A DNA stretch of 64,000 bases from Paraphysomonas bandaiensis (taxonomy: Eukaryota > Protista > Chrysophyceae). Made by a program: the position numbers and the translations under genes. Below, piece by piece: positions 7,978-64,000 of this stretch. The stretch spans positions 144,637 through 208,636 of the forward strand of contig CBFFRP010000412.1 in assembly GCA_965644295.1 (NCBI GenBank), given 5' to 3'. The first letter of the stretch is position 1, and every line of letters starts with the position of its first letter. Below the pieces are notes generated by a model that was given only the letters and a program-made list of their open reading frames with translations, did not search any database and was not told where the DNA came from.

Positions 7978-12040
<4,063 letters not shown>

Positions 12041-21206: not shown

Positions 21207-21886
21207 CTCGCTCGAAGCAAACGCAGTGACATCTTCCTAACATCTGCTGACCTCAGGAGCAAAGGATTGATAAATAATAATAGGTAGGATCTAGGAAAAT
21301 AGTATGACTAGGAAATTCAACCAAATTGACTAGGTTGAATAATATATCTCATAATAGGTCCGTCCAAAAATCCATTGTTTGCATCGCTCTACGTTGAGAA
21401 AACTCTGGATTATTCAATTGGACTGTTCCTGAGATTTTACGCGGGTGCCCGTAGGCTCCTTTTAGTATCCTACTATTCCCGACATTTTTGTATTCCGGCT
21501 AGTACCGTGCGTATATATTTAATTTTCAAATATGTTTCTAGGTGGTGCTTATATAAGATCACAGTTCTATATCATGAAATACCGCAGTTGTGCGTCTATA
21601 AATAATAGTTAATTCATCCAGAAGTCAAGCAAAATTTACTCAGAAGTGTAGCTCATGTATCCTTCTACTGAATTCGTCTACAGTTCATATTCTAGTACAA
21701 TTATATTGGTCCAGAAATGACGTTTCAATACAAAAAGATATTAAAAGAGTATCTTGCAAAGGCTGTTATTGAACTAAGCCCTCAGTTAATACAAAATACA
21801 AAATATGAATTTATTATCATTGCTTCTTCTATACACCTGTAGGTAGCACGCATATAAGCGTTCCATTTTACCGCAACAAAAAACAA

Positions 21887-42800: not shown

Positions 42801-43909
42801 TGGATATGTTAGAATTTCCCGACGATAAAGAAGAAAATCAGGAATTTAACTCTAAAGAAGGTAATATGAAGGACGATGATGAATTATACAAAGGCGGAAT
42901 TACCGTGCAAAATGTCGACTCATGGATGGCGAAAAATGATACAGAAGGTGTCGGAACCTTAGTTGAGAATGACGACGAGGATGGTCCCTGCGACGATGTT
43001 GAAGTGATAGAAAATCAGGAATTATTGGACGAATCACGTCTGCGTGAAGCCCAGGAGCAATGGATGCGCCTCTCTGCGCAATATCAGAGTTCAAGTATTC
43101 GATTATGTGAACAGCTACGTCTTGTATTGGAGCCCACACTAGCCAGTCGACTACAGGGTGACTACAGGACTGGTAAGAGAATTAATATGAGGAGAGTAAT
43201 TGGTTACGTAGCATCGGGGTTCAGAAAGGATAAAATATGGATGCGGCGGACCAAGCCAAGTAAGAGGGAATACCAAGTAATGGTTATGATTGATGACAGT
43301 AGCTCCATGGGCCAGGCGGGGCCTCTTGCAATGGCCTCCCTGTCAATGCTTTCTGGAGCGCTTACACGACTTGAAGTAGGAGATATATCTGTCTGCTCAT
43401 TTGCTGAGAAACTGAAGTTACTTCATTCTTTTGGCAAACCTTTCTCAGATACAGTGGGAGCAAAAGTATATTCTCAATTTACGTTTGGTGCCAAGCAAAC
43501 TCGAATTGCATCTGCGTTGCAGTCAGTGGTGCCTATATTCGAAGAATCAAGGTTATCCTCTGCTTCGTCATCTGCGGGGAATGTGACATTGCAAATATGT
43601 TTACTTATCTCTGATGCAAGGATCGATTCGGACAACAGAGAAAACCTGAACAGAATTGTCCGGGAAATGGCAGAAAAAAATATTCTTGCTGTACTTATAA
43701 TTATTGATAAGAATGACAACGCCAAAGACTCCATATTTGCAACTAAAACTGTCGAGTTCACACCGACAGGGCTTGTGACAAAGGGCTACTTGGATGATTT
43801 TCCGTTTCCATACTATGTAGCTATTCAGCAAGTTGACGCGTTGCCAGAAGTTCTGGCCGATGCATTGAAGCAATGGTTTGAATTAATAAGAACACAGCTC
43901 GACAGTTGA
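24883..43909 (+). CDS. MDN1: Midasin/Rea1 AAA+ ATPase (six AAA modules, linker, D/E-rich tail, MIDAS), ~6,270 aa
   Basis: Walker A motifs GESGSGKS, GETGSGKT, GPTSVGKT, GETGCG|KT, GPPGV|GKT and GHTGSGKR. Long acidic tail, then LQGDYRTGKRINMRRVI and MIDAS IDDSSSM. Introns at 25073-25130, 25247-25296, 29193-29239 and 30690-30739. Start codon is tentative. Confidence 0.96.
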
Positions 43910-44932: not shown

Positions 44933-47326
44933 CTACTTGCGCCTTCTTTTATCCCTTGGTCCCTCATTAATCACTTCAGTGGAACTCTTAACTTTCTCTC
45001 CAAGATTTCTCTTTCTCTGCTCCATATATGATAAACCAACCAATGACTTTGTATAAATATCTGCTGCTTGTTGCGATGTATGCACATGCACTAACTTAAT
45101 CGTATTGAACTGATTGGGATCCACGTGCTCTCTCACCATGTGATACTTAATCTCAATGTGCTTCGACTTCTTGTGAAACACTGGGTTTTCGGCCAAATCC
45201 TGGGCACTCTGACTGTCGATGAAGAATGGTGTGGGTTTGATGAGCCTCAACTTAATCTCACCCGTCACCCCCCGAACCCATAGCACTTCTTGGAGACCCG
45301 AGTAAATACACTGATACTCAGACTGCATGCTTGACGTTGCCACTGTCGTCTGCAGTTTGGACTGCCAGACTATAGGCCCTCCCGCTGCAAACCCAACGTA
45401 CCCCGACGTGGACTTCCTGGAGAGCTGATCTCCCGCCCAATCCGCGTCAGTAAACATATGGAAGTCGAACCGTCTACTCCCATATTGAATCCCTTTGTCA
45501 ATAGAACCACGAATATATTGCCATACATGTGTTAATAGCTTGCATACTTCAATATTCACCTTATTACTGAACCGAGACAGTACTCCCACTGCATAGGCAA
45601 TATCCGGCCTCGTGTTCATCGATAGATATAGTAATGCACCTATCAGCGGCCGATATGGGAAGTTATCTACTATAAGCTGTTCCTCCTCGGTATGCTCATG
45701 CCGCGCCCCTTTTGCCACTAAATCCATTGCTTCCGCCGGTAGAGGACTCTTCCGTACCTTTCGCGGTGGCCCAAGATACTTTTCAAACTTTTCTAAGATC
45801 TTAGCCGCATATACTGATTGGTCAAGACGAATATACTCTGGCGTTCTTGTGACTCGAACATTCAGAAAATGTTCCATCTCGCCCATATCCTTCATATCAA
45901 ACCGGGCACACAGTTGAGCTTTAATATCCTTCACTATGTTGACATCACGACCTAACACTAGGATATCATCCACATATATCGTTAATAATATCAATTCATC
46001 GCCCTTATACTGATAATACAAACACGGGTCTAATACACATGGTTTAAAATGCATAGATCGTATGAATTTATCCAATGTTTTCCACCACGACCGCGGGGAA
46101 CTCCGAAGCCCGTATAACGACTTCTTCAACTTAAAGCAGTACCCCTCAGGCAGCTGAAAGTCCGGAGTTGCCTTCATATATACATCCCCCTCTATATCTG
46201 CATATAGAAATGCGTTAGACACATCCAGTTGATGAATTACCATGTTCATCACGAAAGCTATGGCGATTAACAGTCGCACTGTTACCCCCTTAACAACGGG
46301 TGCGAAATGGTTCGCCCAACCACTCGACTGCTGTCCACAACCGATTGCTACAAGACGAGCCTTATATCGGCGGACCTCTCCCTCCTTATCGTACTTCTTT
46401 CCATAGACGTACTTGGAGTGCAGTGGGACGACTCCGTCCGGTATACGAGTCACCTCCATGGTATCTCGCTTCGCCAAACCCTCTCGCTCTACACGGCGAG
46501 CTCGTCTCCACTCCCTGTGCTCGGCACTCTCCAAGGACTCACGATGTGTCTGAGGCACTGTCGACTCTTCCGCTGACATCCACACTGAGTCTGCCTCCTG
46601 TAAAAGGTCACTCACATCACTCTCATCACTCAAATGATGGATTTGTCCTAACACCGACACATTCGTTACCGTCCTTGGAGTTCTTGCGCGTTTGCCGTGC
46701 GGATGATTCTCGGCAGGGGTCCCTTCCCCCGAAGGTAATGCTGAGTCAGCCTGGGGCTGCACCTGCCCACTTTCCGACTGCTGTGGCACCACTCCGCTGA
46801 TACCGCCGTCACGGTTGTCAGTAACTCTGGCCCTAACCACCCTCTGCGCAAGATCCTCTGTCATCTTCTTGATGTCAGCAATATGAATAGGAGTTTTATC
46901 CTCCACTTGAACCTGGTTACCAGTAACCAACGACCGGTATCCCACAATAAGTCCCTTCCTTATCACCACTCTGTTAGTCTTGTATAGCAGACCACCATCC
47001 TCATGGTGCTTTCCGATAAGATACTCAAACTCACCCGGTTGACGAGCCTCGGGATCTATAGCCACTTGAGCCTCCTCCAGCTCTCTATAATAATCCTGAG
47101 ACCTCTCAGGTACCGATTCATCAAATAATACATGTACAGAGTGTACTACGGTGTCCCCCACTAGCACCTTGTATCCTTTTCGATCAGCTGGATACCCTAT
47201 GAAATAACCTGTCATTGCTTTGTCCTCCCAGTCCTTCCTCCTGTCGGCCTTGGGTGTTAGCACATATGCTTTGCACCCCCATTTCCGTAGCCACGATAGG
47301 CTGGGAACGCTCCCCCTGGGACACAC
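44933..47326 (-). CDS. Copia pol, 3' part (integrase C-terminus, reverse transcriptase, RNase H)
   Basis: WGCKAYV, RYKARLVA, HQLDVSNAFL, LKKSLYGLRSSPRSW, YVDD, FTDADWAG, KSKHIEIKYH and ADIYTK. Confidence 0.93.
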   Translation of the reverse strand: MCPRGSVPSLSWLRKWGCKAYVLTPKADRRKDWEDKAMTGYFIGYPADRKGYKVLVGDTVVHSVHVLFDESVPERSQDYYRELEEAQVAIDPEARQPGEFEYLIGKHHEDGGLLYKTNRVVIRKGLIVGYRSLVTGNQVQVEDKTPIHIADIKKMTEDLAQRVVRARVTDNRDGGISGVVPQQSESGQVQPQADSALPSGEGTPAENHPHGKRARTPRTVTNVSVLGQIHHLSDESDVSDLLQEADSVWMSAEESTVPQTHRESLESAEHREWRRARRVEREGLAKRDTMEVTRIPDGVVPLHSKYVYGKKYDKEGEVRRYKARLVAIGCGQQSSGWANHFAPVVKGVTVRLLIAIAFVMNMVIHQLDVSNAFLYADIEGDVYMKATPDFQLPEGYCFKLKKSLYGLRSSPRSWWKTLDKFIRSMHFKPCVLDPCLYYQYKGDELILLTIYVDDILVLGRDVNIVKDIKAQLCARFDMKDMGEMEHFLNVRVTRTPEYIRLDQSVYAAKILEKFEKYLGPPRKVRKSPLPAEAMDLVAKGARHEHTEEEQLIVDNFPYRPLIGALLYLSMNTRPDIAYAVGVLSRFSNKVNIEVCKLLTHVWQYIRGSIDKGIQYGSRRFDFHMFTDADWAGDQLSRKSTSGYVGFAAGGPIVWQSKLQTTVATSSMQSEYQCIYSGLQEVLWVRGVTGEIKLRLIKPTPFFIDSQSAQDLAENPVFHKKSKHIEIKYHMVREHVDPNQFNTIKLVHVHTSQQAADIYTKSLVGLSYMEQRKRNLGEKVKSSTEVINEGPRDKRRRK

Positions 47327-49530
47327 TCATATGGAGACATCCATCCTTGCCACGTCCGAGTTGGCATTCGTCGCACAATGTAACATGCAGTTTGATAAGC
47401 ATCAGACCAGAACGACTTTGGAAGTCCAGATGCCGTCAACATCGTCAGTGTCATCTCCCCAATTGTTCGGAATTTCCTCTCAGACACCGCGTTGAGCTCT
47501 GGCGTGTCTCGTGTTGTATGTGACACCCGAGTCCCATATCGCTGCAACAGATACTCTCTTATCTGCTGACTAATAAGTTCGGATCCTCCATCGGCATGAT
47601 ACTCCACTATACGGTTCCACCCCTCGTACTTCACTAAGTGGACCTCGCACAAGTGTCGTAGACATTTGAACACCTCCTCTCCGCTTCGAGTCCTCAATCC
47701 ATATTCCCATATCATCTTTGTTGCTAAGTCCGTAAATAGGAGCACGTACTTATACCCTTGTCTGGATTCACAATTGAGATAGACGGAGATGTCCGCTGTT
47801 ACTCTTTCCAGGAACCTGACTGCGCTTAGCTCTTCGTTGTCCCGTGATTTGAACGAATGCCTGGTTATCTTCGCCTTGGCACACCATTTACACAGGGGTT
47901 TCTTGCAACTCTTCTCCTTTGCCTTCGAAAGGTGATGTCGTTGTAGTCCTGATCCTCTGAATAACATGTGTCGGTGAGCTTCTAATAACTTCGATTTCGA
48001 GACATGTCCAGTACGCTCATGTAAGCGATCCAACGCATCTTGTCCTGTATTATCCGACAAATTTACCTCCTCCATCTGATTGCACATAGACACATTTGGC
48101 AGATTTAACACCTCCATCAAGTCCACATACGGCATCCCTCCATGCTCATCGTACTCTCCAGTCAACACCTCGTTTCCAGAGTCCAATTCCACGATTTTAG
48201 GCTTTCGAAGCAGTTGTAATCCGTATCCCATTGATCTCAGCATCCCTCCTGACACAATGTTCTTCACCGCTTCTTCACTAACTCTGATGTCTCTCCATTC
48301 CCCGAATGTACCAGCCCCCTGTGTCTCCAATTGAGAACCCTTTCTAGTTAGTTGGATTGCCCCAAACTCAGGAGTAAATGACTCCAGTGCAATTTTATCC
48401 TTTACTATAAACAGTCTTTTACTTGCACAACTGTCCAGATATACACGAGGTTCTTCCGACGTATCCACCGATAGCAAAACCTCTTCTCCAAACATATTCG
48501 CTTCATCATCCGACGACTCTCCGTCGTTGACGTATTTCTTCCATTCTGTCTCGAATTTCCTGTTCGATTTTCGAGGATTCTCATTATCCGGGTTTTTTAT
48601 GTTCTTCCGTTTTTTCGACTTGCACTGTCGGGCTTTATGACTAAAATCTCCACAGATATGACAACCAGTATAATCCTTTGATCCTGGCTGCTGCACACTC
48701 TTCGAAGCCTTTTCCTTTGTCTTCCCTTTTCTTTTGAACTTATCCATTTTTCTTTGTCGTTCCTTAGCATAACAATTCGCTGCTACATGTCCCTTCTTCC
48801 GACAAAATGAACAAACCACTGGCTCCTTCGACGCCGTAAAATTGATCTCTTCAGATTTGTCTCCCTTTAGTTTCTTCAGCTGCGTCATAGCCTCGTCATA
48901 CTCTTCACAAGCCTCTTTCACCGAATCAAATGTAGTTGTTGCTTTAGGCATCATCGCTACCGACATCCATAAATCATGTAATTCCTCTATCTGCAGCGCT
49001 GCTTTTATCTTTGCTAATTTACTTGCCTCTGTCTGCGGTTGTCCCAATTTTATGAGCTTCTGGATTATACCGTTCAGTCGATCTACCCCAACAGACACCT
49101 TTTCCCCCGGCCTTATTTTGAACGAATGGTATTCTGCCGTAGTCTTCTCCAATACAGTCCCAATCTCGCCTCTGAACCTATCAACCAGTGTCTGAAGGAG
49201 CTCACTGGATAACACCTCCTTAGCAGGATCATCAGCAGGTAAAATTGCCTTCCCCTCCAAATATTGATTGGCTACCTCCAACACATCAGGGTCATGCTCG
49301 CAAGCCTCCCAAATAGTACTAACACAGGTATCATTACGCTCTCTCCATGACTCTAAATTCCTTCCTCCGGCTGGCGGGTCCTCCAAGCCAAGATGGTTTC
49401 GGTTTTTCTTCATTAGATGCATCTTGATTTTTCTCGCTGAATAGTCTGCTTGGTTCTTGTCAAACCGTAGCTTCTTGTCATCTTCCCCATCCCTACAACT
49501 AGCATTCGCTACCATAACAGAAGTTGACAT
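47257..49530 (-). CDS. Copia gag-protease-integrase (5' part of the polyprotein)
   Basis: Two CCHC knuckles (CSFCRKKGHVAANC, CHICGDFSHKARQC), protease YLDSCAS, integrase H-H-C-C (LHERTGH...CKWC) and DDE core (TADI, HADGGSE, NAVSERKFRT). Confidence 0.92.
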   Translation of the reverse strand: MSTSVMVANASCRDGEDDKKLRFDKNQADYSARKIKMHLMKKNRNHLGLEDPPAGGRNLESWRERNDTCVSTIWEACEHDPDVLEVANQYLEGKAILPADDPAKEVLSSELLQTLVDRFRGEIGTVLEKTTAEYHSFKIRPGEKVSVGVDRLNGIIQKLIKLGQPQTEASKLAKIKAALQIEELHDLWMSVAMMPKATTTFDSVKEACEEYDEAMTQLKKLKGDKSEEINFTASKEPVVCSFCRKKGHVAANCYAKERQRKMDKFKRKGKTKEKASKSVQQPGSKDYTGCHICGDFSHKARQCKSKKRKNIKNPDNENPRKSNRKFETEWKKYVNDGESSDDEANMFGEEVLLSVDTSEEPRVYLDSCASKRLFIVKDKIALESFTPEFGAIQLTRKGSQLETQGAGTFGEWRDIRVSEEAVKNIVSGGMLRSMGYGLQLLRKPKIVELDSGNEVLTGEYDEHGGMPYVDLMEVLNLPNVSMCNQMEEVNLSDNTGQDALDRLHERTGHVSKSKLLEAHRHMLFRGSGLQRHHLSKAKEKSCKKPLCKWCAKAKITRHSFKSRDNEELSAVRFLERVTADISVYLNCESRQGYKYVLLFTDLATKMIWEYGLRTRSGEEVFKCLRHLCEVHLVKYEGWNRIVEYHADGGSELISQQIREYLLQRYGTRVSHTTRDTPELNAVSERKFRTIGEMTLTMLTASGLPKSFWSDAYQTACYIVRRMPTRTWQGWMSPYECVPGGAFPAYRGYGNGGAKHMC
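49503..49514 (-). other. Primer binding site, probably tRNA-iMet
   Basis: TGGTAGCGAATG directly after the 5' LTR, complementary to a tRNA ending ...TTCGCT-A-CCA (A1-U72-type acceptor stem typical of initiator Met). Confidence 0.7.
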
Positions 49531-49806
49531 TATTTGCTAAGGTTTACTATTCTCAACTGATAAGATGAAATTATAAACATTACATGATAAAGAACCTAAG
49601 TTGTGTTCGATGTGTTCAACACCATTCATTTACTACTATAGTGTACAACCACACACTCAGTCATCGTATCCTGTATAGTCATCCACTTCTACTTCAGTTT
49701 CATACTACATAATATAATGTACTAATTACATATATATCTTTCGATCCTTGCATCTCACATAATACTGCACTCAATTGCAAGTATATAGAATCTTCAGATC
49801 TCAACA
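49515..49806 (-). repeat. 5' LTR (292 bp)
   Basis: Direct repeat of 44517-44808. Confidence 0.95.
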
Positions 49807-50912
49807 GCCACTGTTACCAGCGAGTCTATTCGTCTCCGGTGCCTTGCCATCATGCACTCCACAGAACATACAGAATTAAACGTTGCCTGTGTCTGCTTGA
49901 AGTATAAAATTTGACTTCGGTCTGCTAATGTGTACCTTTATCACTTTCGACATATCCTCCTATAAGTTACTTCGCGCTGCGGGTTACATCAATGACTTGT
50001 GCGTCAAATTACATACCCTGTAGGAACGCCCGGTCAAAAGCACCTCAAACTTGGATGACATTTGCTCGACAATTTACCTGTAATATCTGCAGATAACATG
50101 CCGACACCGTCCTGAATTGCTGCATTCAGGTTGCCATAGACACTTCAGTGATGGTTGCTGATATTGTTTTACATACGTCGTCATATGTCTCATTGTACAG
50201 ATGTCCTAAAATGACTGCGCCTAGTAAAGAAATCGTTGAATCATTTTACTATTGACCTGAGAAATGTACCTCGTCACCAGGACCTCGAATTCAAGGCCCT
50301 TGTGCTTCATTCTAGACACACAAGCAGTATGCCTGACGACAGCGAGAGTGAGTTTCCCATTCACGAAACATGACTTTAAATTCGATATCCTGAAAGACGA
50401 GGTGCACCCCTCACATCAAGAAGGTAAAACGATTCAATGAGTGTATTACCCAATGACATAGTGGTTAAAATGCAGGTTGTTGTCAACGTAAATATCGTAG
50501 ATAAACCGCCTCACAGACACATATATCTGGATTCGTTGGAGCTCAGCTACTTCTCCAAGTTCACCATTCAGTAGTTCGAATATGTGCAGATTAACGAGAT
50601 TAAGCTTGAGCCAGCCCTAATAGAGCAGACGTGTACGAAACCTACTTATGTTCAATAACGAAATGACGTATTCGATGTTTGTCAAGTTGAATGCTCAGAG
50701 TTTTTGTGAAATGATAGCGAAGTGACCAAAGTGCTATCCAAAGTTGAGTTTATTGCAACTTTGCGTCACGCTCTGAGATTCCTTAAACCCCTAGTTTGGG
50801 AATCAGTGCGTTGCTGAGGAATTTCGGTTTTTCTTTTGCTATATGTACCCGCTGTCCCGACTACACTAGATTTCTGAGGAAAACACGGCCAACAGTCTCA
50901 GAGTCATCTAAT

Positions 50913-51950
50913 TTGTATGAGAGCACTGTACAGCCAGGCTGATAATAAGGACTCTTCACCAAAGCACCAATCTCATACTCTTGCGGTGCAATTTCATCGA
51001 CACTTATGCCATTGCTACTCAGCAATTACACCTTTATCACCGGTATCATCAGGAGACACCCTCTGAGCCGTTAGCCTTCGGTAATGTCAGGACGAGCCCC
51101 CAGGCCTAGGCAAGATCTTGCGTAGCCCTTTCGACTTGTCCGCGGACATCTGAGACAGCTTCGTCATCATTCACTTCTAGTCTCGCGTGCAACTGCCTCG
51201 TTGTGCCCATGAACATGTTTACACTCTTTTCCGCGATATGAATTCCATACAAGGTAAAAGCTACACATCCTCGGGTTACTTCTACCATCTTGCAAATATG
51301 CATTAGTTGTTCCATGGATCCTCGATCTGACTCCCCAACAACAGGTAGCATCATCCTTCTTTGATTTCCGTCGTGTCTTCTTTTAAGTGACAGGATGCAG
51401 AATTTGGAAGACAGAGTACAAAAGGTGGAAGATGTTGATCAAATCAACCACAACATTCAAAGAGCTCCGATGCACCAGCAGTTTCAAAGCGCAAGAAATC
51501 TAAGAAAGCGGAAAGGAAAGCCAGATATTCAACTCTATAGGACCAGAGAATTGGTCCCGAAATCAACAACATCTTGGACTTGTATTGACTGCTTTCGCCT
51601 CATCAATGAGGTAATTGACACTCATAGGCGCCATATCCAAAGAGTGGGAGGAGAGACCCTGACACACAGTAGTGGCGTATAAAGGCTATGTACTGTCAGT
51701 CTGTCAGTTCGTTGAGCGTTATCAGAGTGGGATGCTTCTCCCACAGCCACGAACTTTACACTTTTTACCTCTTTTTCGATATGACACTGAAGGTTTTACG
51801 TAGATATCTCCTGATGATACCGGTGATAAAGGTGTAATTGCTGAGTAACAATGGCATAAGTGTCAATGAAATTGCACCGCAAGAGTATGAGATTGGTGCT
51901 TTGGTGAAGAGTCCTTATTATCAGCCTGGCTGTACAGTGCTCTCATACAA
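50913..51950. repeat. 144-bp near-perfect inverted repeat (50913-51056 / 51807-51950) with a 750-bp spacer
   Basis: Arms are reverse complements with 2 mismatches by eye. Confidence 0.93.
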
Positions 51951-52090
51951 CGGCTGAGGGAGGACGTATGAGGCTCAGTTCGATAACGACGGCGATATTC
52001 GAACAATCCTTATGACTTTTCTGTGCACTAGTTAGTAACAACAGGGAGACATCTATCTAGCTTGACTAGTTTTCTTCTAGCTACTAAACT

Positions 52091-52138
52091 GGTGCTGATT
52101 CTTAACTCCTATTGCTAATAATAAGACTTTTAATATAC
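52091..52138 (+). repeat. Fragment of repeat family A
   Basis: GGTGCTGATTCTTAACTCCTATTGCTAATAATAAGACTTTTAATATA resembles 7364-7412. Confidence 0.6.
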
Positions 52139-53292
52139 ATATTATATTCAACAGATAATATTTTTTAAATTCTTTGTATGTTTATACCCATTTCTATTGT
52201 TGCAGTTTTCTATGTGTTGTTATGGTTATATGTATTCCATTGCTACAGAGAACACTGGCTAGGCTATATCATGCCCACATATGTCTCATGTTTAAACCAA
52301 ATACATAATATGATATCATAAAAACGATTCAATTTTTATTAATTGTTCTCAATAGTGTCTCTTCCGTTTGCTTCAAGCCAATAGAGCGGCGACGAAGATT
52401 GCTTACCTGTAATACTTGGGTATAATATTAAATATTATATTTATTTATAATACCCTTTCAAATATCCAATAAAAATCGTTTTTTTGTATTATTTCTCCCT
52501 ACAATTTTTAGGCACGGTTATTTTTACAGTGTAATTTTGAACTTGATTTAATATGTTTATTGTAGACCTTTTCTGAGTGCTTTCATGGAGTGATAGCGGA
52601 AAGGTAGAGGAAAGCGAAGGGAAATAATGTTGCAATATATTGTAAGCTAGCTTATCAAAACAATAAAAGCGTAGTTTTTCTAACTGGGCGAACAAAACAT
52701 ATTACAACAATACCGTATATTATTCCCTATGCTTCCTGTAACGACTTCATCCATACTACTAGTGGCACCGATTGTTGTTTTGGCTCGAAGGAAATCTTCT
52801 AATGATCTAATGACTGATTCCAGGTGTTTCAATGATATTTATACTTTGCAGCATGTTGAGATGCTGACTGGCTCCTTAGGTTTGAAAACTATAGGTAATC
52901 TAGTTTTCCATGGAAGACCCCCTCAACAAAGTCGGACTCGCACCTTTTCGTGGTGTTCTGGGGGATAAGTACCGGAGATATTTCTCCCGGAAACTAACGT
53001 GAGCCGCAAACATAAGTAGCAGATAATGTTCTGCCCACTCATAGCTAATAGCCAAATGCGTGCGTGGTACAAGGTACACTAAATAGTGTCACTTGTGTAG
53101 ACGTCTTTGAGTGACAAATAAACAGGCACACGAAAATGGGCCCACATCAAGGGCATCCGAGATATTGAGTTGCCTGCTGAAGTCAAGCATCCGGGATGTT
53201 CACCTTAAGGACTCAAAAATCCTGAAGTCAGCAAATGTCAGGTATATCAACATACTGCTTGCTCACTGCGTACTGCGTTTGCTTAGAGTGGT

Positions 53293-53411
53293 AGAGCGAA
53301 ACTGGTTGCATTTTGGTGCTTGCGGTGACGCACAAGCAGCTTTCGTAGCGTTAAATAATAGGGTAGCAGAGTTAAGCACCAACTCTTAAACTCCTATTGC
53401 TAAGAATCAGA
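53293..53411 (+). repeat. Copy of repeat family A terminus
   Basis: AGAGCGAAACTGGTTGCATTTTGGTGCTTGCGGTGACGCACAAGCAGCTTTCGTAGCGTTAAAT matches the reverse complement of ~21143-21206. Confidence 0.8.
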
Positions 53412-53579
53412 CAATCACTATACTATGAACGACGCAGTAATTTTGCTGTTAATATATCAGCTGTAGCAACGAACAACCTTGTTTGGTATAAGTATGTCCC
53501 CTCCACTAATCATTCAGCTGGCCATTTCGCGAAGCTATTGCCGCAGCCTACTCAGTTCGCAACCTTCACAGTGCCGTAG
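53408..53579 (+). pseudogene. Decayed Copia RNase H C-terminal fragment
   Basis: YYERRSNFAV...VWYKYVPSTNHSAGHFAKLLPQ resembles the Copia consensus H.R.KHI...L.YVPT..Q.AD.FTK.L; weak match. Confidence 0.4.
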
Positions 53580-54219
53580 TTAGAAAAATTGATTCGTTAC
53601 TTACATGTGTCACTGCAATTCTTCTACTCTTTAACATATATATTAAAGATAATAGCGTGACTATGTTATATAAACACAACTACTATATTCGCAAGTGTTT
53701 ACGTACAGGACATCGGGACTACAGAAAGTTCAGTAAAAGCTTGTGAACTTCCTGGGTAAGGGCAATACAAGCCCTTACGAACAGGGATATCCAAGCGACA
53801 GGCATAGTTGGAGCACAAATGTTATAGAGGAGAGTTTTTTCTTCCTTTCTTCACTTGATCTGTTACGATCTTTGTAAATTATTCGTCCCATATATATACT
53901 CCTGTGTCGTCGGTATTCGTAGTCACACAAGGTTGAGTAACTTCACAAAGTATCACTGTGCCGATCTAATGGGTTACGACATTGTCATGCTATTAAAACT
54001 AACTGGTGAGCAATTCTTGTTGCCTCAGAAGAAATGATATAGAAATACATTCTGAGCACACCGAGATAGAGTAACAGTCAACCACACACTCACGTGTGCA
54101 TACCACCACATATAATATTCACTCAATACCCTCTCTACATGTGCTCCGATACGCAAAATCTTACATATATCGCTGTTGCTAAGAGTGATAGAAGATGATG
54201 TTACATGAGAAGTCTGATA

Positions 54220-55476
54220 TCATAGTGGCTCCAACATAGCATACTGTATCTCCCCCGAATATCTCCGATCATAAGCTGCAGAAAACAAATTCTTCAGATA
54301 TGAATAACCTGGAGTCTCGAAATATCCCAACCCTTTCACATGCTTAAAATATAAGCAGATCTCTTCTGATAATAGAGAACTGTGAGACGCATTAAACTCA
54401 ACGCAAAACCACAGCGCTACCTGGCAGGCCTTCACACAGAATGGCCAGCGGGGTCCGAGCCATTGAGACCATAATCAGCTCCAACCTCTTACGCTTGTCA
54501 GAAGTCGCATCAATATGCTTTCTCCATGGAAGAATATAGTCAGGATACATGGATGCGATCGTGTATCCGAGTGCCTCCACATCGTCTCGACGTGTCTCCG
54601 CTGCAACACAAGTTATCAGTGAAAATATTATAAACAATAGCATTATTATGACATACTCATTCCACCAAGTTGCCTTACCTACTCCAAGCATTGTGTTAAA
54701 TGCCATAAACTCAGGTGTACCTGTTACTGCTAGCCCATCCATGTACTCGACATGGTGGCCAGTACTGTCCATATACGTAGAGGATCGGCCAAAGTCTATT
54801 AGATATATAGTCGAATTTTCACTATCCAAACCAACGACAAAATTCTCAGGTTTAATATCTACCTCCAAAATTCAACAGGGCCAGCAAACGACAAGCACCG
54901 TACCTGAATGAATAATTCCTGAAGAGTGTATCCTCTCTAAAAGACGTACAGCTTGATACGCAAAAATCAGCAAATTCTTAATGCAGTTTTCTCTGTGCCG
55001 CTCTGTTGGCCACAAATTAATTTTAGTTTTCAACTCCTGATGCATATTCCCTCCCAGCCGTTGCTGAACTAAAGCACTGTACTTACCATCTTCAGTGTCT
55101 CCAAACCAATACGCATGGGCTATACCCTCTACATATTCATGGAGTTACATTCGTACCACATAACTATACGTACCTACCCGTGTTGTTCAGAAGACTCAAC
55201 ACATTAAATTCATGTTGAAGTTCATCTCTATTGCTGTGTGGCTCAAACTTTACCACAACTTCAACTCCATTTAGAGTATTTAGTCCCAAATACACAGTAC
55301 CATGTCCTCCACTCCGCAGATAAGAGTGTATCTTGAACTGAAACACGAACCCATAATATTATTAGTAAGAAACATTTCTAGTAAGGCTGACTTACCTTGC
55401 CACCAATCAAAGAATCTTTGTGAGGTATTGTGGAATGGAAATGAGTCGATTGCACATAATGCAAATGTATTATCAT
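54220..55476 (-). CDS. Casein kinase 1-family kinase, divergent
   Basis: Spliced reading: IGGK|FKIHSYLRSGGHGTVYLG...VVVKFE, IIHS|DIKPENFVVG, YLIDFG, TGTPEFMAFN, RRDDVEALGY, LPW, LCEGLP|EEI and PGYSYLKNLF. ATG 55476 is tentative. Confidence 0.85.
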
Positions 55477-55627
55477 AAAAAAAGCAACAGAGAGCATAAA
55501 TGACAATAAATATCATTCCATGATAATGATGAACAGCTTGGGTTCCATAGCCGATCACAGAGGCTATTATATATGGGTTATATGAGTCTGGTGTGGTCAT
55601 GGACAATGCATGCCTCAATATGATTGA

Positions 55628-55698
55628 CATACATACACACACTATACAGTACACACATACGTACCTACCTACCTACCTACATAAGTACATACATACAT
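55628..55698. repeat. Compound (ACAT/ACCT)n microsatellite in the CK1 / cyclophilin-nucleoporin intergenic region
   Basis: catacatacacac...catacgtacctacctacctacctacataagtacatacatacat. Confidence 0.7.
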
Positions 55699-55891
55699 AT
55701 CCTACGAATGTATATGGCATGCATTGATTTCCCTGCCACTCAAAATACGGTGCTGTATTCTCCATCCATCTCATCTCTCACTTCTCACTTCTCTCATTTG
55801 GATTTGAAAGGACATCAACGAAGTCATTTTATGAAGTATGTGAATTACCTCTCACAACCTCTGAGAGTTGCTAATTTCCCCATATTTCAGT

Positions 55892-58800
55892 ATGGATGCC
55901 TGGAAATTAAGGAGAAAAGCAAGGCAGAAAGATACGAAATCAACAGTATCATCTCCTGTATCAGACATCTCTAAACAATCGTATAGAAATAAGCTTGTGT
56001 TATCATATCAAAATGCCCGTTTGAACTGGGAAAATAACCGGACTAAGACAGTAGCAGTATCTCATTATGAGACGAATAGTAGCAATGATCCATCACTCAA
56101 TGGTTAATACTTATTGTTACATATACTAATATGTAACATGTTGTATATAGAGCCCTCATGTAATTCCAGCACTGTAGTATCAAGCCATGAAGAAGATAAA
56201 ATAGCAGATATTAGAAAAGAAATTGAAGAACTATATCGACAGTATAATCCATCTAAGTTGAGTTCTGTGGATAAGCTGTTGAATGACAACAAAGGACAGG
56301 AGCATGTGCTCCTTGAGCGTATAAAGAAAAAGTATACCGGTGGATTGGAGTACCCCTCAGATACAGATCCTGGTAGCAGGGTGTTTATGGACTTCAGTGT
56401 AGATGGTGTAGTGTTGGGACGGGTTATGTTCAGGCTATATGATAATGAGGTGCCTATCACAGCAGAGAATTTCCGGTGCCTTTGTACTGGCGAAAAGGTA
56501 ATACACCGTTGAGAATACAGTATACGTAACAGTGCTGTGATCAGGGTTTATGTGCCCGCACTAGAGCACAGCTGTACTACAAAGGGAGTCGGGTACATCG
56601 CATCGTGCCTGGCTTTGTCGTACAGGCCGGGGATATTACCAAAGGGGATGGCTCGGGAGGTGTCTCAATTTATGGCGGCACAGAGCTTGGGAATATATTT
56701 GCATTATTCAAGGATGAGAGACCTTTCTTGGCCCACCGTAGACCTGGGCTGCTATCAATGGCAAACAATGGGCCGAACCGCAATGGGTAAGTAAAGGTGT
56801 TATTTCTTTCCTAGCTCACGGTTACGTAGATCACAATTCTTCATCACTCTATCTGCCAGTCCCCACTTAGACGGTAGTGTATTTTATATAACTTCATATT
56901 GAAGGACCTGACATTTGTTGGCAGGCAAGCATGTAGTCTTTGGAGAAGTTGCTGATGCAGATAGCTGGAAAATTGTCCAAGATATAGCGACACGTTCTCC
57001 AGACAAAAATAACATCACTATACATGACTGTGGTCAGATATCAAGTGGAACCAAAGCTGAAAGCAAATCTTCAACTACTGACGAGCAGAAGACCAGTAGA
57101 ATAGCTACATTTTCATCCCGTACACCCGAGCACAGTAGCAAGTCCATATTTCCATCAACAGGAACTTCTAGTTTTGGCACATCAGGAGCTGCACCATCAT
57201 CTGGCGGCTTCAGCTTCGGAACTTCAAGCCAGGGAGGAGCTGTATTCGGATCATCCGGTGGAAGTATGTTTGGCGGTGTTAGTGGCAGTTCTGCTTTAGG
57301 CGAGTCTGGTAAAACATCTTCGTCATTTCCGAAGAGTTCTGATGTCAGTGATGGAACTTCAAGCCAGGGAGGAGCTGTATTCGGATCATCCGGTGGAAGT
57401 ATGTTTGGCGGTGTTAGTGGCAGTGCTGCTTTAGGCGAGTCTGGTAAAACACCTTCGTTATTTCCGAAGAGTTCTGGTTTCAGCTTCGGAGCTTCAAGCC
57501 AGGGAGGAGCCGTATTCGGATCATCCGGTGGAAGTATGTTTGGCGGTGTTAGTGGCAGTGCTGCTTTAGGCGAGTCTGGTAAAACATCTTCGTCATTTCC
57601 GAAGAGTTCTGATGTCAGTGATGGAACTTCAAGCCAGGGAGGAGCTGTATTCGGATCATCCGGTGGAAGTATGTTTGGCGATGTTAGTGGCAGTGCTGCT
57701 TTAGGCGAGTCTGGTAAAACACCTTCGTTATTTCCGAAGAGTTCTGGTTTCAGCTTCGGAGCTTCAAGCCAGGGAGGAGCCGTATTCGGATCATCCGGTG
57801 GAAGTATGTTTGGCGGTGTTAGTGGCAGTGCTGCTTTAGGCGAGTCTGGTAAAACATCTTCGTCATTTCCGAAGAGTTCTGATGTCAGTGATGGAACTGC
57901 ATCGTCTCCAGTTACGAAGGCGGGTAGTTGCGTATTGAGTGCATCAGAGTATGTTCGTAAGCTACAGTTAGGCGAAAGTGATGATGATGAGGATGATGTC
58001 GAGGACTTAGTGGAGGATGTTGAGTCCGAGATTGATAATGCCAAGAAGGCATGGGACTCTGTGGTCGGCAGTGGGATTTCGGAAGTAGTTGTAGGGGATA
58101 TCGTTCCAGCAAGTGACACGGATGGTGGTGATTCAAGTAGTGTGTTGGATGAGTTAGTAACTGCCCTGGGCACAACTTACTGCGAGGAGAAGCATGGTAC
58201 TGCGTTACGTGGTTTGTTGTCAAATGCGCCTGGGAAATCAACAACGGATAGTGCTGACCACCTCGATAGGGATGTGTTTATAGACTGGTATATTCATTAC
58301 GTGTTTCAAACAGATGGTGCGGACAGTGATGGCGACGAATGTAGCACCCGAAGTGATAGTAAAGGAGAATCTGCGACTGAGGGTTGGTCGTCTGTGAATT
58401 GGTCAGTGGCCCCTGAGTCAACGTCAGAGGGTGCTCGATGGAAGTGCAGTAGTTGTTTGGTAACGAATGATTGGGCTTGTACCAAGTGTGTGGCTTGTGA
58501 ATCAGCTGCACCTCACGCTAAATCTTCCACTGCGCCTGTTGGATTTTCAGCATCGAAGTCTGTGGGAAGCAACGAATCCAATGCTGCTGGTACTGGAAAG
58601 TTCACATTTGGATCGAGTGGTACAACTGAGAGTACTAGCGGTTCTAATGGTCCTTCAACAGGAGGCTTTAGTTTTGGCACGTCAGGTGCTGCCCCAATCT
58701 CTGCAGCAGCACCATCATCTGGCGGTTTCAGCTTCGGAACTTCAAGCCAGGGAGGAGCCGTGTTCGGATCATCCGGTGGAAGTATGTTTGGCGGTGTTAG

Positions 58801-61800
58801 TGGCAGTGCTGCTTTAGGCGAGTCTGGTAAAACATCTTCGTCATTTCCGAAGAGTTCTGATGTCAGTGATGGAACTGCATCGTCTCCAGTTACGAAGGCG
58901 GGTAGTTGCGTATTGAGTGCATCAGAGTATGTTCGTAAGCTACAGTTAGGCGAAAGTGATGATGATGAGGATGATGTCGAGGACTTAGTGGAGGATGTTG
59001 AGTCCGAGATTGATAATGCCAAGAAGGCATGGGACTCTGTGGTCGGCAGTGGGATTTCGGAAGTAGTTGTAGGGGATATCGTTCCAGCAAGTGACACGGA
59101 TGGTGGTGATTCAAGTAGTGTGTTGGATGAGTTAGTAACTGCCCTGGGCACAACTTACTGCGAGGAGAAGCATGGTACTGCATTACGTGGTTTGTTGTCA
59201 AATGCGCCTGGGAAATCAACAACGGATAGTGCTGACCACCTCGATAGGGATGTGTTTATAGACTGGTATATTCATTACGTGTTTCAAACAGATGGTGCGG
59301 ACAGTGATGGCGACGAATGTAGCACCCGAAGTGATAGTAAAGGAGAATCTGCGACTGAGGGTTGGTCGTCTGTGAATTGGTCAGTGGCCCCTGAGTCAAC
59401 GTCAGAGGGTGCTCGATGGAAGTGCAGTAGTTGTTTGGTAACGAATGATTGGGCTTGTACCAAGTGTGTGGCTTGTGAATCAGCTGCACCTCACGCTAAA
59501 TCTTCCACTGCGCCTGTTGGATTTTCAGCATCGAAGTCTGTGGGAAGCAACGAATCCAATGCTGCTGGTACTGGAAAGTTCACATTTGGATCGAGTGGTA
59601 CAACTGAGAGTACTAGCGGTTCTAATGGTCCTTCAACAGGAGGCTTTAGTTTTGGCACGTCAGGTGCTGCCCCAATCTCTGCAGCAGCACCATCATCTGG
59701 CGGTTTCAGCTTCGGAACTTCAAGCCAGGGAGGAGCCGTGTTCGGATCATCCGGTGGAAGTATGTTTGGCGGTGTTAGTGGCAGTGCTGCTTTAGGCGAG
59801 TCTGGTAAAACATCTTCGTCATTTCCGAAGAGTTCTGATGTCAGTGATGGAACTGCATCGTCTCCAGTTACGAAGGCGGGTAGTTGCGTATTGAGTGCAT
59901 CAGAGTATGTTCGTAAGCTACAGTTAGGCGAAAGTGATGATGATGAGGATGATGTCGAGGACTTAGTGGAGGATGTTGAGTCCGAGATTGATAATGCCAA
60001 GAAGGCATGGGACTCTGTGGTCGGCAGTGGGATTTCGGAAGTAGTTGTAGGGGATATCGTTCCAGCAAGTGACACGGATGGTGGTGATTCAAGTAGTGTG
60101 TTGGATGAGTTAGTAACTGCCCTGGGCACAACTTACTGCGAGGAGAAGCATGGTACTGCATTACGTGGTTTGTTGTCAAATGCGCCTGGGAAATCAACAA
60201 CGGATAGTGCTGACCACCTCGATAGGGATGTGTTTATAGACTGGTATATTCATTACGTGTTTCAAACAGATGGTGCGGACAGTGATGGCGACGAATGTAG
60301 CACCCGAAGTGATAGTAAAGGAGAATCTGCGACTGAGGGTTGGTCGTCTGTGAATTGGTCAGTGGCCCCTGAGTCAACGTCAGAGGGTGCTCGATGGAAG
60401 TGCAGTAGTTGTTTGGTAACGAATGATTGGGCTTGTACCAAGTGTGTGGCTTGTGAATCAGCTGCACCTCACGCTAAATCTTCCACTGCGCCTGTTGGAT
60501 TTTCAGCATCGAAGTCTGTGGGAAGCAACGAATCCAATGCTGCTGGTACTGGAAAGTTCACATTTGGATCGAGTGGTACAACTGAGAGTACTAGCGGTTC
60601 TAATGGTCCTTCAACAGGAGGCTTTAGTTTTGGCACGTCAGGTGCTGCCCCAATCTCTGCAGCAGCACCATCATCTGGCGGTTTCAGCTTCGGAACTTCA
60701 AGCCAGGGAGGAGCCGTGTTCGGATCATCCGGTGGAAATATGTTTGGCGGTGTTAGTGGCAGTGCTGCTTTAGGCGAGTCTGGTAAAACATCTTCGTCAT
60801 TTCCGAAGAGTTCTGATGTCAGTGATGGAACTGCATCGTCTCCAGTTACGAAGGCGGGTAGTTGCGTATTGAGTGCATCAGAGTATGTTCGTAAGCTACA
60901 GTTAGGCGAAAGTGATGATGATGAGGATGATGTCGAGGACTTAGTGGAGGATGTTGAGTCCGAGATTGATAATGCCAAGAAGGCATGGGACTCTGTGGTC
61001 GGCAGTGGGATTTCGGAAGTAGTTGTAGGGGATATCGTTCCAGCAAGTGACACGGATGGTGGTGATTCAAGTAGTGTGTTGGATGAGTTAGTAACTGCCC
61101 TGGGCACAACTTACTGCGAGGAGAAGCATGGTACTGCATTACGTGGTTTGTTGTCAAATGCGCCTGGGAAATCAACAACGGATAGTGCTGACCACCTCGA
61201 TAGGGATGTGTTTATAGACTGGTATATTCATTACGTGTTTCAAACAGATGGTGCGGACAGTGATGGCGACGAATGTAGCACCCGAAGTGATAGTAAAGGA
61301 GAATCTGCGACTGAGGGTTGGTCGTCTGTGAATTGGTCAGTGGCCCCTGAGTCAACGTCAGAGGGTGCTCGATGGAAGTGCAGTAGTTGTTTGGTAACGA
61401 ATGATTGGGCTTGTACCAAGTGTGTGGCTTGTGAATCAGCTGCACCTCACGCTAAATCTTCCACTGCGCCTGTTGGATTTTCAGCATCGAAGTCTGTGGG
61501 AAGCAACGAATCCAATGCTGCTGGTACTGGAAAGTTCACATTTGGATCGAGTGGTACAACTGAGAGTACTAGCGGTTCTAATGGTCCTTCAACAGGAGGC
61601 TTTAGTTTTGGCACGTCAGGTGCTGCCCCAATCTCTGCAGCAGCACCATCATCTGGCGGTTTCAGCTTCGGAACTTCAAGCCAGGGAGGAGCCGTGTTCG
61701 GATCATCCGGTGGAAATATGTTTGGCGGTGTTAGTGGCAGTGCTGCTTTAGGCGAGTCTGGTAAAACATCTTCGTCATTTCCGAAGAGTTCTGATGTCAG

Positions 61801-64000
61801 TGATGGAACTGCATCGTCTCCAGTTACGAAGGCGGGTAGTTGCGTATTGAGTGCATCAGAGTATGTTCGTAAGCTACAGTTAGGCGAAAGTGATGATGAT
61901 GAGGATGATGTCGAGGACTTAGTGGAGGATGTTGAGTCCGAGATTGATAATGCCAAGAAGGCATGGGACTCTGTGGTCGGCAGTGGGATTTCGGAAGTAG
62001 TTGTAGGGGATATCGTTCCAGCAAGTGACACGGATGGTGGTGATTCAAGTAGTGTGTTGGATGAGTTAGTAACTGCCCTGGGCACAACTTACTGCGAGGA
62101 GAAGCATGGTACTGCATTACGTGGTTTGTTGTCAAATGCGCCTGGGAAATCAACAACGGATAGTGCTGACCACCTCGATAGGGATGTGTTTATAGACTGG
62201 TATATTCATTACGTGTTTCAAACAGATGGTGCGGACAGTGATGGCGACGAATGTAGCACCCGAAGTGATAGTAAAGGAGAATCTGCGACTGAGGGTTGGT
62301 CGTCTGTGAATTGGTCAGTGGCCCCTGAGTCAACGTCAGAGGGTGCTCGATGGAAGTGCAGTAGTTGTTTGGTAACGAATGATTGGGCTTGTACCAAGTG
62401 TGTGGCTTGTGAATCAGCTGCACCTCACGCTAAATCTTCCACTGCGCCTGTTGGATTTTCAGCATCGAAGTCTGTGGGAAGCAACGAATCCAATGCTGCT
62501 GGTACTGGAAAGTTCACATTTGGATCGAGTGGTACAACTGAGAGTACTAGCGGTTCTAATGGTCCTTCAACAGGAGGCTTTAGTTTTGGCACGTCAGGTG
62601 CTGCCCCAATCTCTGCAGCAGCACCATCATCTGGCGGTTTCAGCTTCGGAACTTCAAGCCAGGGAGGAGCCGTGTTCGGATCATCCGGTGGAAGTATGTT
62701 TGGCGGTGTTAGTGGCAGTGCTGCTTTAGGCGAGTCTGGTAAAACATCTTCGTCATTTCCGAAGAGTTCTGATGTCAGTGATGGAACTGCATCGTCTCCA
62801 GTTACGAAGGCGGGTAGTTGCGTATTGAGTGCATCAGAGTATGTTCGTAAGCTACAGTTAGGCGAAAGTGATGATGATGAGGATGATGTCGAGGACTTAG
62901 TGGAGGATGTTGAGTCCGAGATTGATAATGCCAAGAAGGCATGGGACTCTGTGGTCGGCAGTGGGATTTCGGAAGTAGTTGTAGGGGATATCGTTCCAGC
63001 AAGTGACACGGATGGTGGTGATTCAAGTAGTGTGTTGGATGAGTTAGTAACTGCCCTGGGCACAACTTACTGCGAGGAGAAGCATGGTACTGCATTACGT
63101 GGTTTGTTGTCAAATGCGCCTGGGAAATCAACAACGGATAGTGCTGACCACCTCGATAGGGATGTGTTTATAGACTGGTATATTCATTACGTGTTTCAAA
63201 CAGATGGTGCGGACAGTGATGGCGACGAATGTAGCACCCGAAGTGATAGTAAAGGAGAATCTGCGACTGAGGGTTGGTCGTCTGTGAATTGGTCAGTGGC
63301 CCCTGAGTCAACGTCAGAGGGTGCTCGATGGAAGTGCAGTAGTTGTTTGGTAACGAATGATTGGGCTTGTACCAAGTGTGTGGCTTGTGAATCAGCTGCA
63401 CCTCACGCTAAATCTTCCACTGCGCCTGTTGGATTTTCAGCATCGAAGTCTGTGGGAAGCAACGAATCCAATGCTGCTGGTACTGGAAAGTTCACATTTG
63501 GATCGAGTGGTACAACTGAGAGTACTAGCGGTTCTAATGGTCCTTCAACAGGAGGCTTTAGTTTTGGCACGTCAGGTGCTGCCCCAATCTCTGCAGCAGC
63601 ACCATCATCTGGCGGTTTCAGCTTCGGAACTTCAAGCCAGGGAGGAGCCGTGTTCGGATCATCCGGTGGAAATATGTTTGGCGGTGTTAGTGGCAGTGCT
63701 GCTTTAGGCGAGTCTGGTAAAACATCTTCGTCATTTCCGAAGAGTTCTGATGTCAGTGATGGAACTGCATCGTCTCCAGTTACGAAGGCGGGTAGTTGCG
63801 TATTGAGTGCATCAGAGTATGTTCGTAAGCTACAGTTAGGCGAAAGTGATGATGATGAGGATGATGTCGAGGACTTAGTGGAGGATGTTGAGTCCGAGAT
63901 TGATAATGCCAAGAAGGCATGGGACTCTGTGGTCGGCAGTGGGATTTCGGAAGTAGTTGTAGGGGATATCGTTCCAGCAAGTGACACGGATGGTGGTGAT
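55892..64000 (+). CDS. Cyclophilin - FG-repeat - (EF-hand-like + RanBP2 zinc finger + FG) x >=6 nucleoporin-like protein; 3' end beyond the window
   Basis: Introns 56103-56150, 56498-56544, 56787-56829 and 56874-56924 join a complete cyclophilin ([54 protein letters not shown]). It continues into a stop-free final exon 56925->64000 encoding GGFSFG/KFTFG repeats and [20 protein letters not shown] fingers at 58439, 59417, 60395, 61373, 62351 and 63329. Confidence 0.88.
57218..57892 (+). repeat. Coding tandem repeat, 5 x 135 bp (45 aa FG unit), alternating A/B variants
   Basis: GGA(A/G)CTTCAAGCCAGGGAGGAGC... starts at 57218, 57353, 57488, 57623 and 57758. Confidence 0.92.
57747..64000 (+). repeat. 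Coding tandem repeat, 978-bp unit (326 aa), ~6.4 copies, nearly identical
   Basis: The ORF-track entries recur at exactly 978-bp spacing, and direct comparison shows only isolated SNPs. Confidence 0.97.

Follow-up and report, generated by a model that had tools for sequence, protein, structure and literature searches.

A 64,000-nucleotide stretch of the genome of the chrysophyte Paraphysomonas bandaiensis (assembly GCA_965644295.1, contig CBFFRP010000412.1, positions 144,637 to 208,636 of the forward strand), referred to here as the window and numbered from its first letter, carries at its 3′ end a gene for a giant modular protein. In this protein a small helical module and a cyclophilin precede phenylalanine-glycine (FG) repeats and a tandem array of modules, each bearing a zinc finger of the kind found in the nucleoporin Nup358/RanBP2. 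The gene is genuine and nuclear, and its source is an ochrophyte stramenopile. We consider, with a probability of roughly 55%, that its product is a giant modular FG protein with a peripheral role at the nuclear pore, that its likeness to Nup358 arose by independent domain shuffling and that its module array evolves in concert. An earlier note, made from the sequence alone, had described the gene as a Nup358-like protein with reversed domain order; the observation as a whole is confirmed and extended here, and of its interpretation the domain set, the fusion, the finger type and independent assembly stand, while uniqueness and a fixed reversed order do not.

Gene Model and Domain Fusion

The gene lies on the positive strand and comprises five exons, with an ATG at 55892 and a reading frame that is still open where the window ends at 64000. 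Its features are as follows.

55892-56102, + strand: exon 1, 70 codons and one base from the first ATG of the frame, without a recognisable domain
56151-56497, + strand: exon 2, the 'hel' module and the initial cyclophilin strands (from about 56369)
56186-56353, + strand: 'hel' three-helix module in exon 2, before the cyclophilin (32-sequence alignment, AlphaFold)
56369-57040, + strand: cyclophilin (Pro_isomerase), interrupted by introns at 56498-56544, 56787-56829 and 56874-56924, with its last ~38 residues in exon 5
56545-56786, + strand: exon 3, cyclophilin core
56830-56873, + strand: exon 4, 44 nt encoding a 14-residue segment of the cyclophilin
56925 to beyond 64000, + strand: exon 5, cyclophilin end, FG repeats and module array
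57209-57898, + strand: FG sub-repeat, a 135-nt (45-aa) unit present five times and containing a recurring 18-residue segment
57746-64000, + strand: tandem array of an in-frame 978-nt (326-aa) unit, 6.4 copies, truncated by the window end
57992-58306, + strand: EF-hand-pair-like domain of unit 1, family motif LGTTYCEE.H ... F.DWY..(W/Y).F
from 58970, 59948, 60926, 61904 and 62882, + strand: EF-hand-pair-like domains of the later units, with a cut copy from 63860 (978-nt recurrence)
58439-58498, + strand: zinc finger 1, RanBP2-type, 20 residues (motif, Pfam and PDB matches)
59417-59476, + strand: zinc finger 2 (motif)
60395-60454, + strand: zinc finger 3 (motif)
61373-61432, + strand: zinc finger 4 (motif)
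62351-62410, + strand: zinc finger 5 (motif)
63329-63388, + strand: zinc finger 6 (motif)

The four short introns proposed in the earlier note all run from GT to AG and measure 48, 47, 43 and 51 nt, and the coding sequence inside the window amounts to 7920 nt, or 2640 codons, in agreement with its figure of more than 2,600 residues. The frame of the last exon (56912-64000) holds 2363 codons without a stop, and because it leaves the window end without one it is missing from the list of open reading frames (ORFs), as had been supposed. An exon upstream of exon 2 is required, because exon 2 contains no methionine before the cyclophilin and a TAA stands at 56105; the exact position of the start codon, 55892, is putative. 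A microsatellite of (ACAT)n and a 12-nt unit lies at 55627-55699, some 200 nt ahead of the ATG and likely within the promoter region.

The fusion of cyclophilin and repeats is real, since the last ~38 cyclophilin residues share one stop-free frame with the FG repeats and the finger array, and since relatives from independent assemblies carry the whole architecture in single uninterrupted ORFs. It is independent of the splice model. Of the two outcomes that the earlier note had set against its own reading, separate genes can be dismissed, and transcripts ending after the cyclophilin would be unexpected, since the frame has no stop there. Two such relatives, P0133 (1160 aa, locus L001 2258-5740) and P0052 (1150 aa), combine hel, cyclophilin, FG repeats and the module of EF-hand-like domain and finger in one ORF. 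All homology searches were run exon by exon rather than on a joined spliced protein. Local alignments of the individual exons to the intron-less P0133 are exactly collinear, with exon 2 matching its residues 189-308, exon 3 residues 318-388, exon 4 residues 390-403 and exon 5 residue 405 onward, one residue being absent at each of two split codons.

By analogy with its closest relative, locus L004, the gene probably continues for several kb past 64000. L004 lies on a 52.9-kb long-read metagenome contig, where the gene occupies 8771-22573 (~13.8 kb) and encodes hel, a cyclophilin with introns at the window's three positions and six near-identical modules of 415-436 residues; in its 3′ part, further FG repeats lead to a final EF-like module, diverged and without a finger, and then to a stop. 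Breaks in the L004 frame at 16894/17073 and within the FG region at 18.3-20.6 kb may be assembly errors of 7x long reads or introns. A 38-nt stretch of the finger region, searched for exactly in the metagenome contigs, gave no match, hence the 3′ end of the window gene was not recovered.

The full cyclophilin that the earlier note had read from the spliced exons is borne out: the Pfam Pro_isomerase profile matches exon 2 over profile positions 1-33 (E 2.8e-5) and exon 3 over positions 35-102 (E 3.2e-12). The remainder of the domain is readable in the 14 residues of exon 4 and in exon 5 (KHVVFGEV...ITIHDCGQI), where it is collinear with P0133; the cyclophilin is likewise collinear with that of P0052, and matches to cyclophilins in PDB reach E-values as low as 7e-18. 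Residues of the catalytic site are found in the exons as HR..P.F..Q, MAN, SQFF and H-L-D-G-K-H. Mapped by eye, and in what we take to be CypA numbering, the residues expected of a cyclophilin-type PPIase (PF00160), Arg55, Phe60, Gln63, Asn102, Phe113, Leu122 and His126, are kept, visible in an 18-residue segment and in HLDGKH, and the position of CypA Trp121 is occupied by His, a replacement that would predict weak binding of cyclosporin. From these residues the domain looks catalytically competent.

Zinc Fingers and the Tandem Array

The pattern W-x-C-x2-C-x3-N-x6-C-x2-C, of which the earlier note had counted at least six instances, occurs exactly six times, at intervals of 978 nt and always in the coding frame; none of the six frames of the window holds a further instance. 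The isolated finger scores 27.1 bits against the cut-off of 27 for the Pfam Zn_ribbon_RanBP profile, as expected of a RanBP2-type finger (PF00641). Of the profile checks that the earlier note had proposed, those for zf-RanBP and Pro_isomerase yielded matches. Its tryptophan, four cysteines and asparagine are invariant over 30 family modules. The PDB sequences that match best are the eight fingers of human RanBP2 and those of Xenopus Nup358 and of Nup153, which have in common with the window finger the residues C-L-V-x-N ... C-x-A-C. As a rule, Ran-binding fingers carry Leu-Val/Ala at the positions where ubiquitin-binding fingers carry Thr-Phe/Met. The ubiquitin-binding fingers of TAB2, HOIP and TRABID score below those of RanBP2, Nup358 and Nup153, and no RNA-binding ZRANB2-type finger is among the PDB matches up to E = 1. 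Superposition of the finger model on the Nup153 fingers in complex with Ran-GDP gives 0.5-0.6 A over 27 residues (48-56% identity); in the structural alignments identity rises to 56% with Nup153 fingers and to 54% with RanBP2 fingers. Sequence and model thus both support the assignment, already made in the earlier note, to the Nup153/Nup358 type and not to the ubiquitin-binding NZF type.

These comparisons also bear on an alternative in which the protein is not a nucleoporin but a cytoplasmic or nuclear scaffold or condensate, with fingers that bind ubiquitin, RNA or another partner, a cyclophilin that serves as a chaperone and FG-like sequences that are low-complexity linkers. The lower scores of the ubiquitin-binding fingers and the lack of ZRANB2-type matches speak against it, as does the co-occurrence of FSFG-type repeats in Ser/Gly/Thr-rich spacers with fingers of this type, a combination that to our knowledge is otherwise known from nucleoporins. 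It gains from the failure to detect a Nup-specific anchoring domain in the window or its relatives, from the source annotations of those relatives, which are confined to hypothetical protein, cyclophilin/EF-hand protein or, wrongly, adhesin, and from a finger residue that varies within the family, considered below. On balance we regard this alternative as rather unlikely.

The FG repeats of exon 5 lie in Ser/Gly-rich linkers, with 45 FG dipeptides, including 15 FSFG and 6 FTFG, and a combined serine and glycine content of 34% in the FG-content count. The 45-aa piece that forms the FG sub-repeat ahead of the array also closes every 978-nt unit. Within a unit, an FG linker and an acidic stretch lead into the EF-hand-like pair, and an acidic linker joins that pair to the zinc finger, which a further FG linker follows. 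The units differ from one another by 0-1 nucleotides per 978 (identity >99.9%), a near-identity on which the earlier note had not remarked, and only two sites in the array vary: 58204, a synonymous A/G difference, and the site at 60738/61716/63672, where G to A replaces Ser by Asn and the copies read G,G,G,A,A,G,A in order.

Because the modules of a single protein share 86-100% of their residues (this holds for the window, P0002, P0024, P0038, P0045, P0048, P0141 and P0147), against a median identity of 38% between proteins, homogenisation of the array and change of its copy number by unequal recombination appear to be a trait of the whole family. The expression 'growing array' used in the earlier note is a fair description in this respect, and the near-identical in-frame 1-kb modules offer a clean example of concerted evolution within coding sequence.

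Near-identity also invites the explanation that the gene is real and the array an assembly artefact, six or more identical units having been produced from a mis-assembled shorter or differently sized repeat. Units that differ at two sites only are hard to assemble, and the frame breaks in L004 are typical of low-coverage long reads. Against this, the unit length is a multiple of three and the frame is kept over 6.4 copies; the Ser/Asn pattern along the copies is non-trivial, as expected of resolved copies; and similar arrays exist in independent assemblies, with six units in L004, four at 332-residue spacing in P0002 from Epithemia and identical pairs in P0048, P0038 and P0147. An artefact of this kind is therefore improbable.

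The array (window 58000-64000) has a strong and constant GC skew of +0.26. On the antisense strand, each unit of the repeat holds long ORFs, of 212 and 110 aa, that have no family matches. Antisense reading frames that span the repeats, 212 and 379 aa in length, have no credible family match and were set aside as by-products of a stop-poor repeat.

EF-Hand-Like Pair and hel Module

Ahead of each finger lies a 105-residue domain that the earlier note had overlooked. AlphaFold, given an alignment of 30 sequences, predicts a helix-loop-strand-helix arrangement that occurs twice (pLDDT 76.7), and Foldseek relates this model to the lobes of calmodulin, to CaBP1 and to the EF domains of calpain with probabilities up to 0.97, the E-values being non-significant, as the domains are small. 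In relatives the aligned segment is covered by Pfam EF-hand_7 (P0052 residues 846-907, for example), and model, fold search and profile together point to a paired helix-loop-helix fold. Read by eye, the window copy lacks the canonical 12-residue calcium loops (D-x-D/N-x-D/N-G ... E): loop 1 is replaced by a longer patternless segment, and loop 2, 12 residues long, is without Gly6 and Glu12. Calcium binding by this domain is doubtful, because neither loop retains the canonical calcium ligands.

The small helical domain noticed at the N-terminus corresponds to a conserved module, predicted to consist of three helices (AlphaFold pLDDT 87.5), that we term hel. Preceded by ~95 residues in the window protein, it has a length of 40-50 residues and the family consensus R..L..FYQ.HNP.KL..VD.TL.KYKG.EE.LF..L..KY, which the window copy represents with a 35-residue segment. 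Mean column identity is 43% over 32 copies from many proteins (alignment A2), and no relatives of hel were found in Pfam, in PDB by sequence or in PDB by fold. Its position varies, as it stands before the cyclophilin in some members and in one to three C-terminal copies in others; copies elsewhere include P0002 3132-3180, P0064 1895-2317 (three copies) and P0019 2760-3098. The hel module and the seemingly calcium-blind EF-hand-like domain provide new, testable interaction surfaces.

An Ochrophyte Family with Several Architectures

One module of 215 residues matches 504 representative proteins in an exhaustive HMMER search, 121 of them at E <= 1e-10, a count of 504 that in part reflects generic arrays of RanBP2-type fingers such as those of metazoan RanBP2. 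The family proper is defined by LGTTY..E.H, F.DWY and the finger invariants; the residues invariant in the module are G, Y, F and W together with the finger W/C/C/N/C/C. The window protein shows LGTTY(C/S)EE.H ... F.DWY..W.F, the acidic linker, the finger, the FG linkers and hel. A word-indexed protein search with residues 330-560 of the long exon, over candidates of 1297-4126 aa, returned nothing at E <= 0.001, a blank that reflects a limit of sensitivity and length, because the exhaustive search found 504 relatives. A search for loci with alignment A3 gave 18, mostly too short for their architecture to be read.

Judged from these matches, the proteins form an uncharacterised and unnamed ochrophyte family present in diatoms, brown algae and marine metagenomes; the named members are all ochrophytes and none has a functional name. 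The window gene is hence one member of a widespread family and not the lone oddity implied by the earlier note. That note had also allowed that the architecture might prove both widespread and already characterised: it is widespread in ochrophytes, and no characterisation was found. A literature search on nucleoporins combining EF-hands and RanBP2 fingers likewise gave nothing relevant.

Three architectures can be distinguished. Architecture A lacks a cyclophilin: proteins of 2000-3300 residues combine FG repeats with two to eight modules, and hel is present in one to three copies towards the C-terminus. It is represented by Epithemia clementina KAL7580077.1 (P0002), Thalassiosira exigua KAL7553465.1 (P0019) and a transcript from MMETSP (P0151). 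Architecture B, that of the window, begins with hel and cyclophilin and continues with FG repeats and modules; the same order is found in the brown algae Sphacelaria rigidula (CAM9900195.1) and Nemacystus decipiens and in the metagenome loci L011, L012 and L004. In architecture C the modules come first and hel-cyclophilin lies at the extreme C-terminus, in P0312 (L003 2845-6654; 1269 residues, cyclophilin at 962-1126) and P0324 (L002 6001-11256; 1751 residues, cyclophilin at 1578-1747), both of which are single ORFs. Since these two have the C-terminal cyclophilin of Nup358, the 'reversed order' of the earlier note does not hold as a fixed trait. Hel-cyclophilin with an FG-rich tail is found in many more diatom proteins, including those of Seminavis, Attheya and Thalassiosira profunda, and in Mayamaea a cyclophilin with an FG-rich tail occurs in which the hel pattern did not fire; a simple pattern detected no fingers in these proteins. 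Residues 54-220 of P0002 give weak beta-propeller matches (BBS7 and WDR3 propellers, E ~0.005), and this N-terminal region could be an anchoring domain of the cyclophilin-less architecture.

Relation to Nup358 and Nup153

The three domain kinds of Nup358 that the earlier note had recognised, cyclophilin, FG repeats and finger array, are all present in the window protein, including a cluster of six fingers that by sequence and model match the Ran-GDP-binding kind. This set, the C-terminal cyclophilin behind the fingers in P0312 and P0324 and finger identities as high as those given above for Nup153 and RanBP2 would all fit a true Nup358/RanBP2 orthologue, deeply rearranged, from an early eukaryote. 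We nevertheless consider such an orthologue highly improbable. Ran_BP1 was not found by Pfam in the window exons and units (read to 64000), in P0133, P0052, P0312 or P0324 or at the 3′ end of L004. No large TPR-like N-terminal anchor was found, the ~95 residues before hel having no Pfam match, and none was found in the complete relatives either; the SUMO E3 region (IR1-M-IR2) has no Pfam match in the window or relatives, and as a short, divergent motif it could escape detection. Nup358, for its part, contains nothing that corresponds to the EF-hand-like domain or to hel.

The cyclophilin gives a similar answer. It is N-terminal in the window protein, and it is no closer to that of RanBP2 than to generic CypA-like or CYP63-like cyclophilins: exon 3 scores 52 bits against the RanBP2 domain and 59 bits against CypA, and the RanBP2 cyclophilin is not among its 60 best PDB matches. 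The cyclophilin phylogeny that the earlier note had proposed was carried out as a quick maximum-likelihood tree, in which the RanBP2 cyclophilin groups with plant CYP63-like and other sequences (SH-aLRT 90), apart from the stramenopile hel-cyclophilin groups, on a weak backbone.

In published surveys Nup358/RanBP2 is treated as an animal invention and reported only from opisthokonts or metazoa (PMC2951903, PMC8421043), and a review of cyclophilin architectures lists cyclophilin with zf-RanBP only for human RanBP2 (PMC7641896). Because Ran_BP1, TPR and E3 regions were not detected, the cyclophilin is generic and Nup358 has been reported from opisthokonts only, the better reading of these sequences is that the gene is not a Nup358 orthologue and was assembled independently, by domain shuffling within ochrophytes, one of the two origins that the earlier note had allowed.

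Candidates for Nup153 have been reported in chromalveolates (Table 3, PMC2951903), and a row of Table 2 in the same paper appears to mark Phaeodactylum, Phytophthora and Thalassiosira, in columns that are not alignable with certainty. It may be, as a conjecture, that the chromalveolate candidates of these screens are proteins of architecture A. Pfam gives no match to the Nup153-specific N-terminal pore-targeting region, either in the window or among the long relatives P0001-P0003.

Proposed Role at the Nuclear Pore

Location at the pore and binding of Ran are plausible from the sequence and the finger model. Of all the parts the fingers tell most about function, and together with the FSFG-type repeats they make a peripheral FG nucleoporin that concentrates Ran-GDP the best-supported mechanism. 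The protein would sit at the periphery of the nuclear pore, where its FG repeats would bind transport receptors, its finger array would hold a local pool of Ran-GDP in the manner of the Nup153 and Nup358 finger arrays, and its cyclophilin would act on, or bind, proline-containing clients. Each module would further contribute an EF-hand-like pair that has probably lost calcium binding. The domain set would have arisen by independent shuffling within a stramenopile family, not by common descent with Nup358, and unequal recombination would keep the array homogeneous and alter its copy number, as in concerted evolution.

Several points weigh against this proposal. RanBP2-type fingers bind ubiquitin or RNA in other proteins, FG-rich and low-complexity proteins occur outside the pore, and family members differ (L/M/S/C/F) in the residue that precedes the conserved valine of the finger. 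The cyclophilin tree has a weak backbone and does not place the 80-residue exon-3 fragment of the window; the 3′ part of the gene lies beyond 64000, outside the window; and the copy number of a 978-nt repeat with >99.9% identity hinges on the quality of the assembly. No paper was found on the family, or on the combination of cyclophilin and RanBP2 finger in diatoms or stramenopiles.

Peripheral parts of the pore are least understood outside animals, fungi and plants. A bolder form of the proposal, possible in our view but somewhat short of an even chance, is that ochrophytes convergently built a Nup358-like peripheral nucleoporin around an expandable Ran-GDP-tethering array, with the cyclophilin moved between the ends of the protein and the number of modules tuned by unequal recombination. 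If true, Ran-type fingers, FG repeats and a cyclophilin would have been joined independently a second time, suggesting that they belong together functionally at the pore and are not an accident of animals, and the family would give a first handle on pore-associated Ran handling in the ecologically dominant diatoms and brown algae.

Genomic Surroundings

Elsewhere in the window lie genes for a myosin with a PH/ankyrin tail, midasin, a gamma-glutamyltranspeptidase and a JmjC/cupin protein, and a Ty1/copia element. Three of these have the following coordinates.

13100-18540, + strand: myosin with IQ motifs and, in the next ORF, PH and ankyrin repeats, a stramenopile-type myosin tail
25300-43909, + strand: midasin (MDN1), three large open stretches of 1298, 530 and 4372 aa that contain AAA_5 and midasin lid domains
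44933-49530, − strand: Ty1/copia-type retrotransposon, overlapping ORFs of 797 and 757 aa with RVT_2, retroviral SH3-like, integrase core and zinc knuckle

The best database match of the myosin, a metagenome protein, is 55% identical, and its named relatives are all stramenopiles; because this best match is only 55% identical, the collection appears to hold no close sequenced relative. Introns as short as 43-51 nt and the stramenopile affinities also set the contig apart from human DNA. The Ty1/copia element looks largely intact. Between it and the gene described here, the ~6 kb of 49600-55890 contain no ORF longer than 156 aa and a single match, a weak one to protein kinases on the minus strand (54398-54868, E 0.004); this region may be an intron-rich or decayed gene.

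Comparison with Known Systems

Metazoan Nup358/RanBP2 (human, PDB 7r5j; shark XP_038673803.1, P0058) resembles the window protein in uniting fingers with C-L-V-x-N ... C-x-A-C, FG repeats and a cyclophilin in one giant protein, and its C-terminal placement of the cyclophilin is matched by some relatives of the window gene. The two differ in the spacing of their fingers, 326 residues in the window and ~60 in Nup358, in the near-identity of the window's modules and in the EF-hand-like partner of each finger and the hel module, neither of which Nup358 has. Nup153, a protein of the nuclear basket with four Ran-GDP-binding fingers (PDB 3gj3-3gj8, 7mo1-7mo5), is like the window protein in finger type and in its FxFG repeats, but it has no cyclophilin, no EF-hand-like domain and no hel.

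Among cyclophilins, the multi-domain members of the CypA-like clade (plant CYP63/PPIG-like, Cyp40) share with the window domain a core whose catalytic residues are Arg, Phe, Gln, Asn and His, and many multi-domain cyclophilins also have His in place of CypA Trp121; their partner domains are RS-rich tails or TPRs, whereas those of the window cyclophilin are FG repeats, EF-hand-like domains and RanBP2 fingers. The diatom relatives of architecture A have no cyclophilin and carry one to three C-terminal copies of hel, compared with the single copy ahead of the cyclophilin in the window, but they are built from the same modules of EF-hand-like domain and finger, with the same FG linkers, the same hel module and the same homogenisation of modules within each protein.

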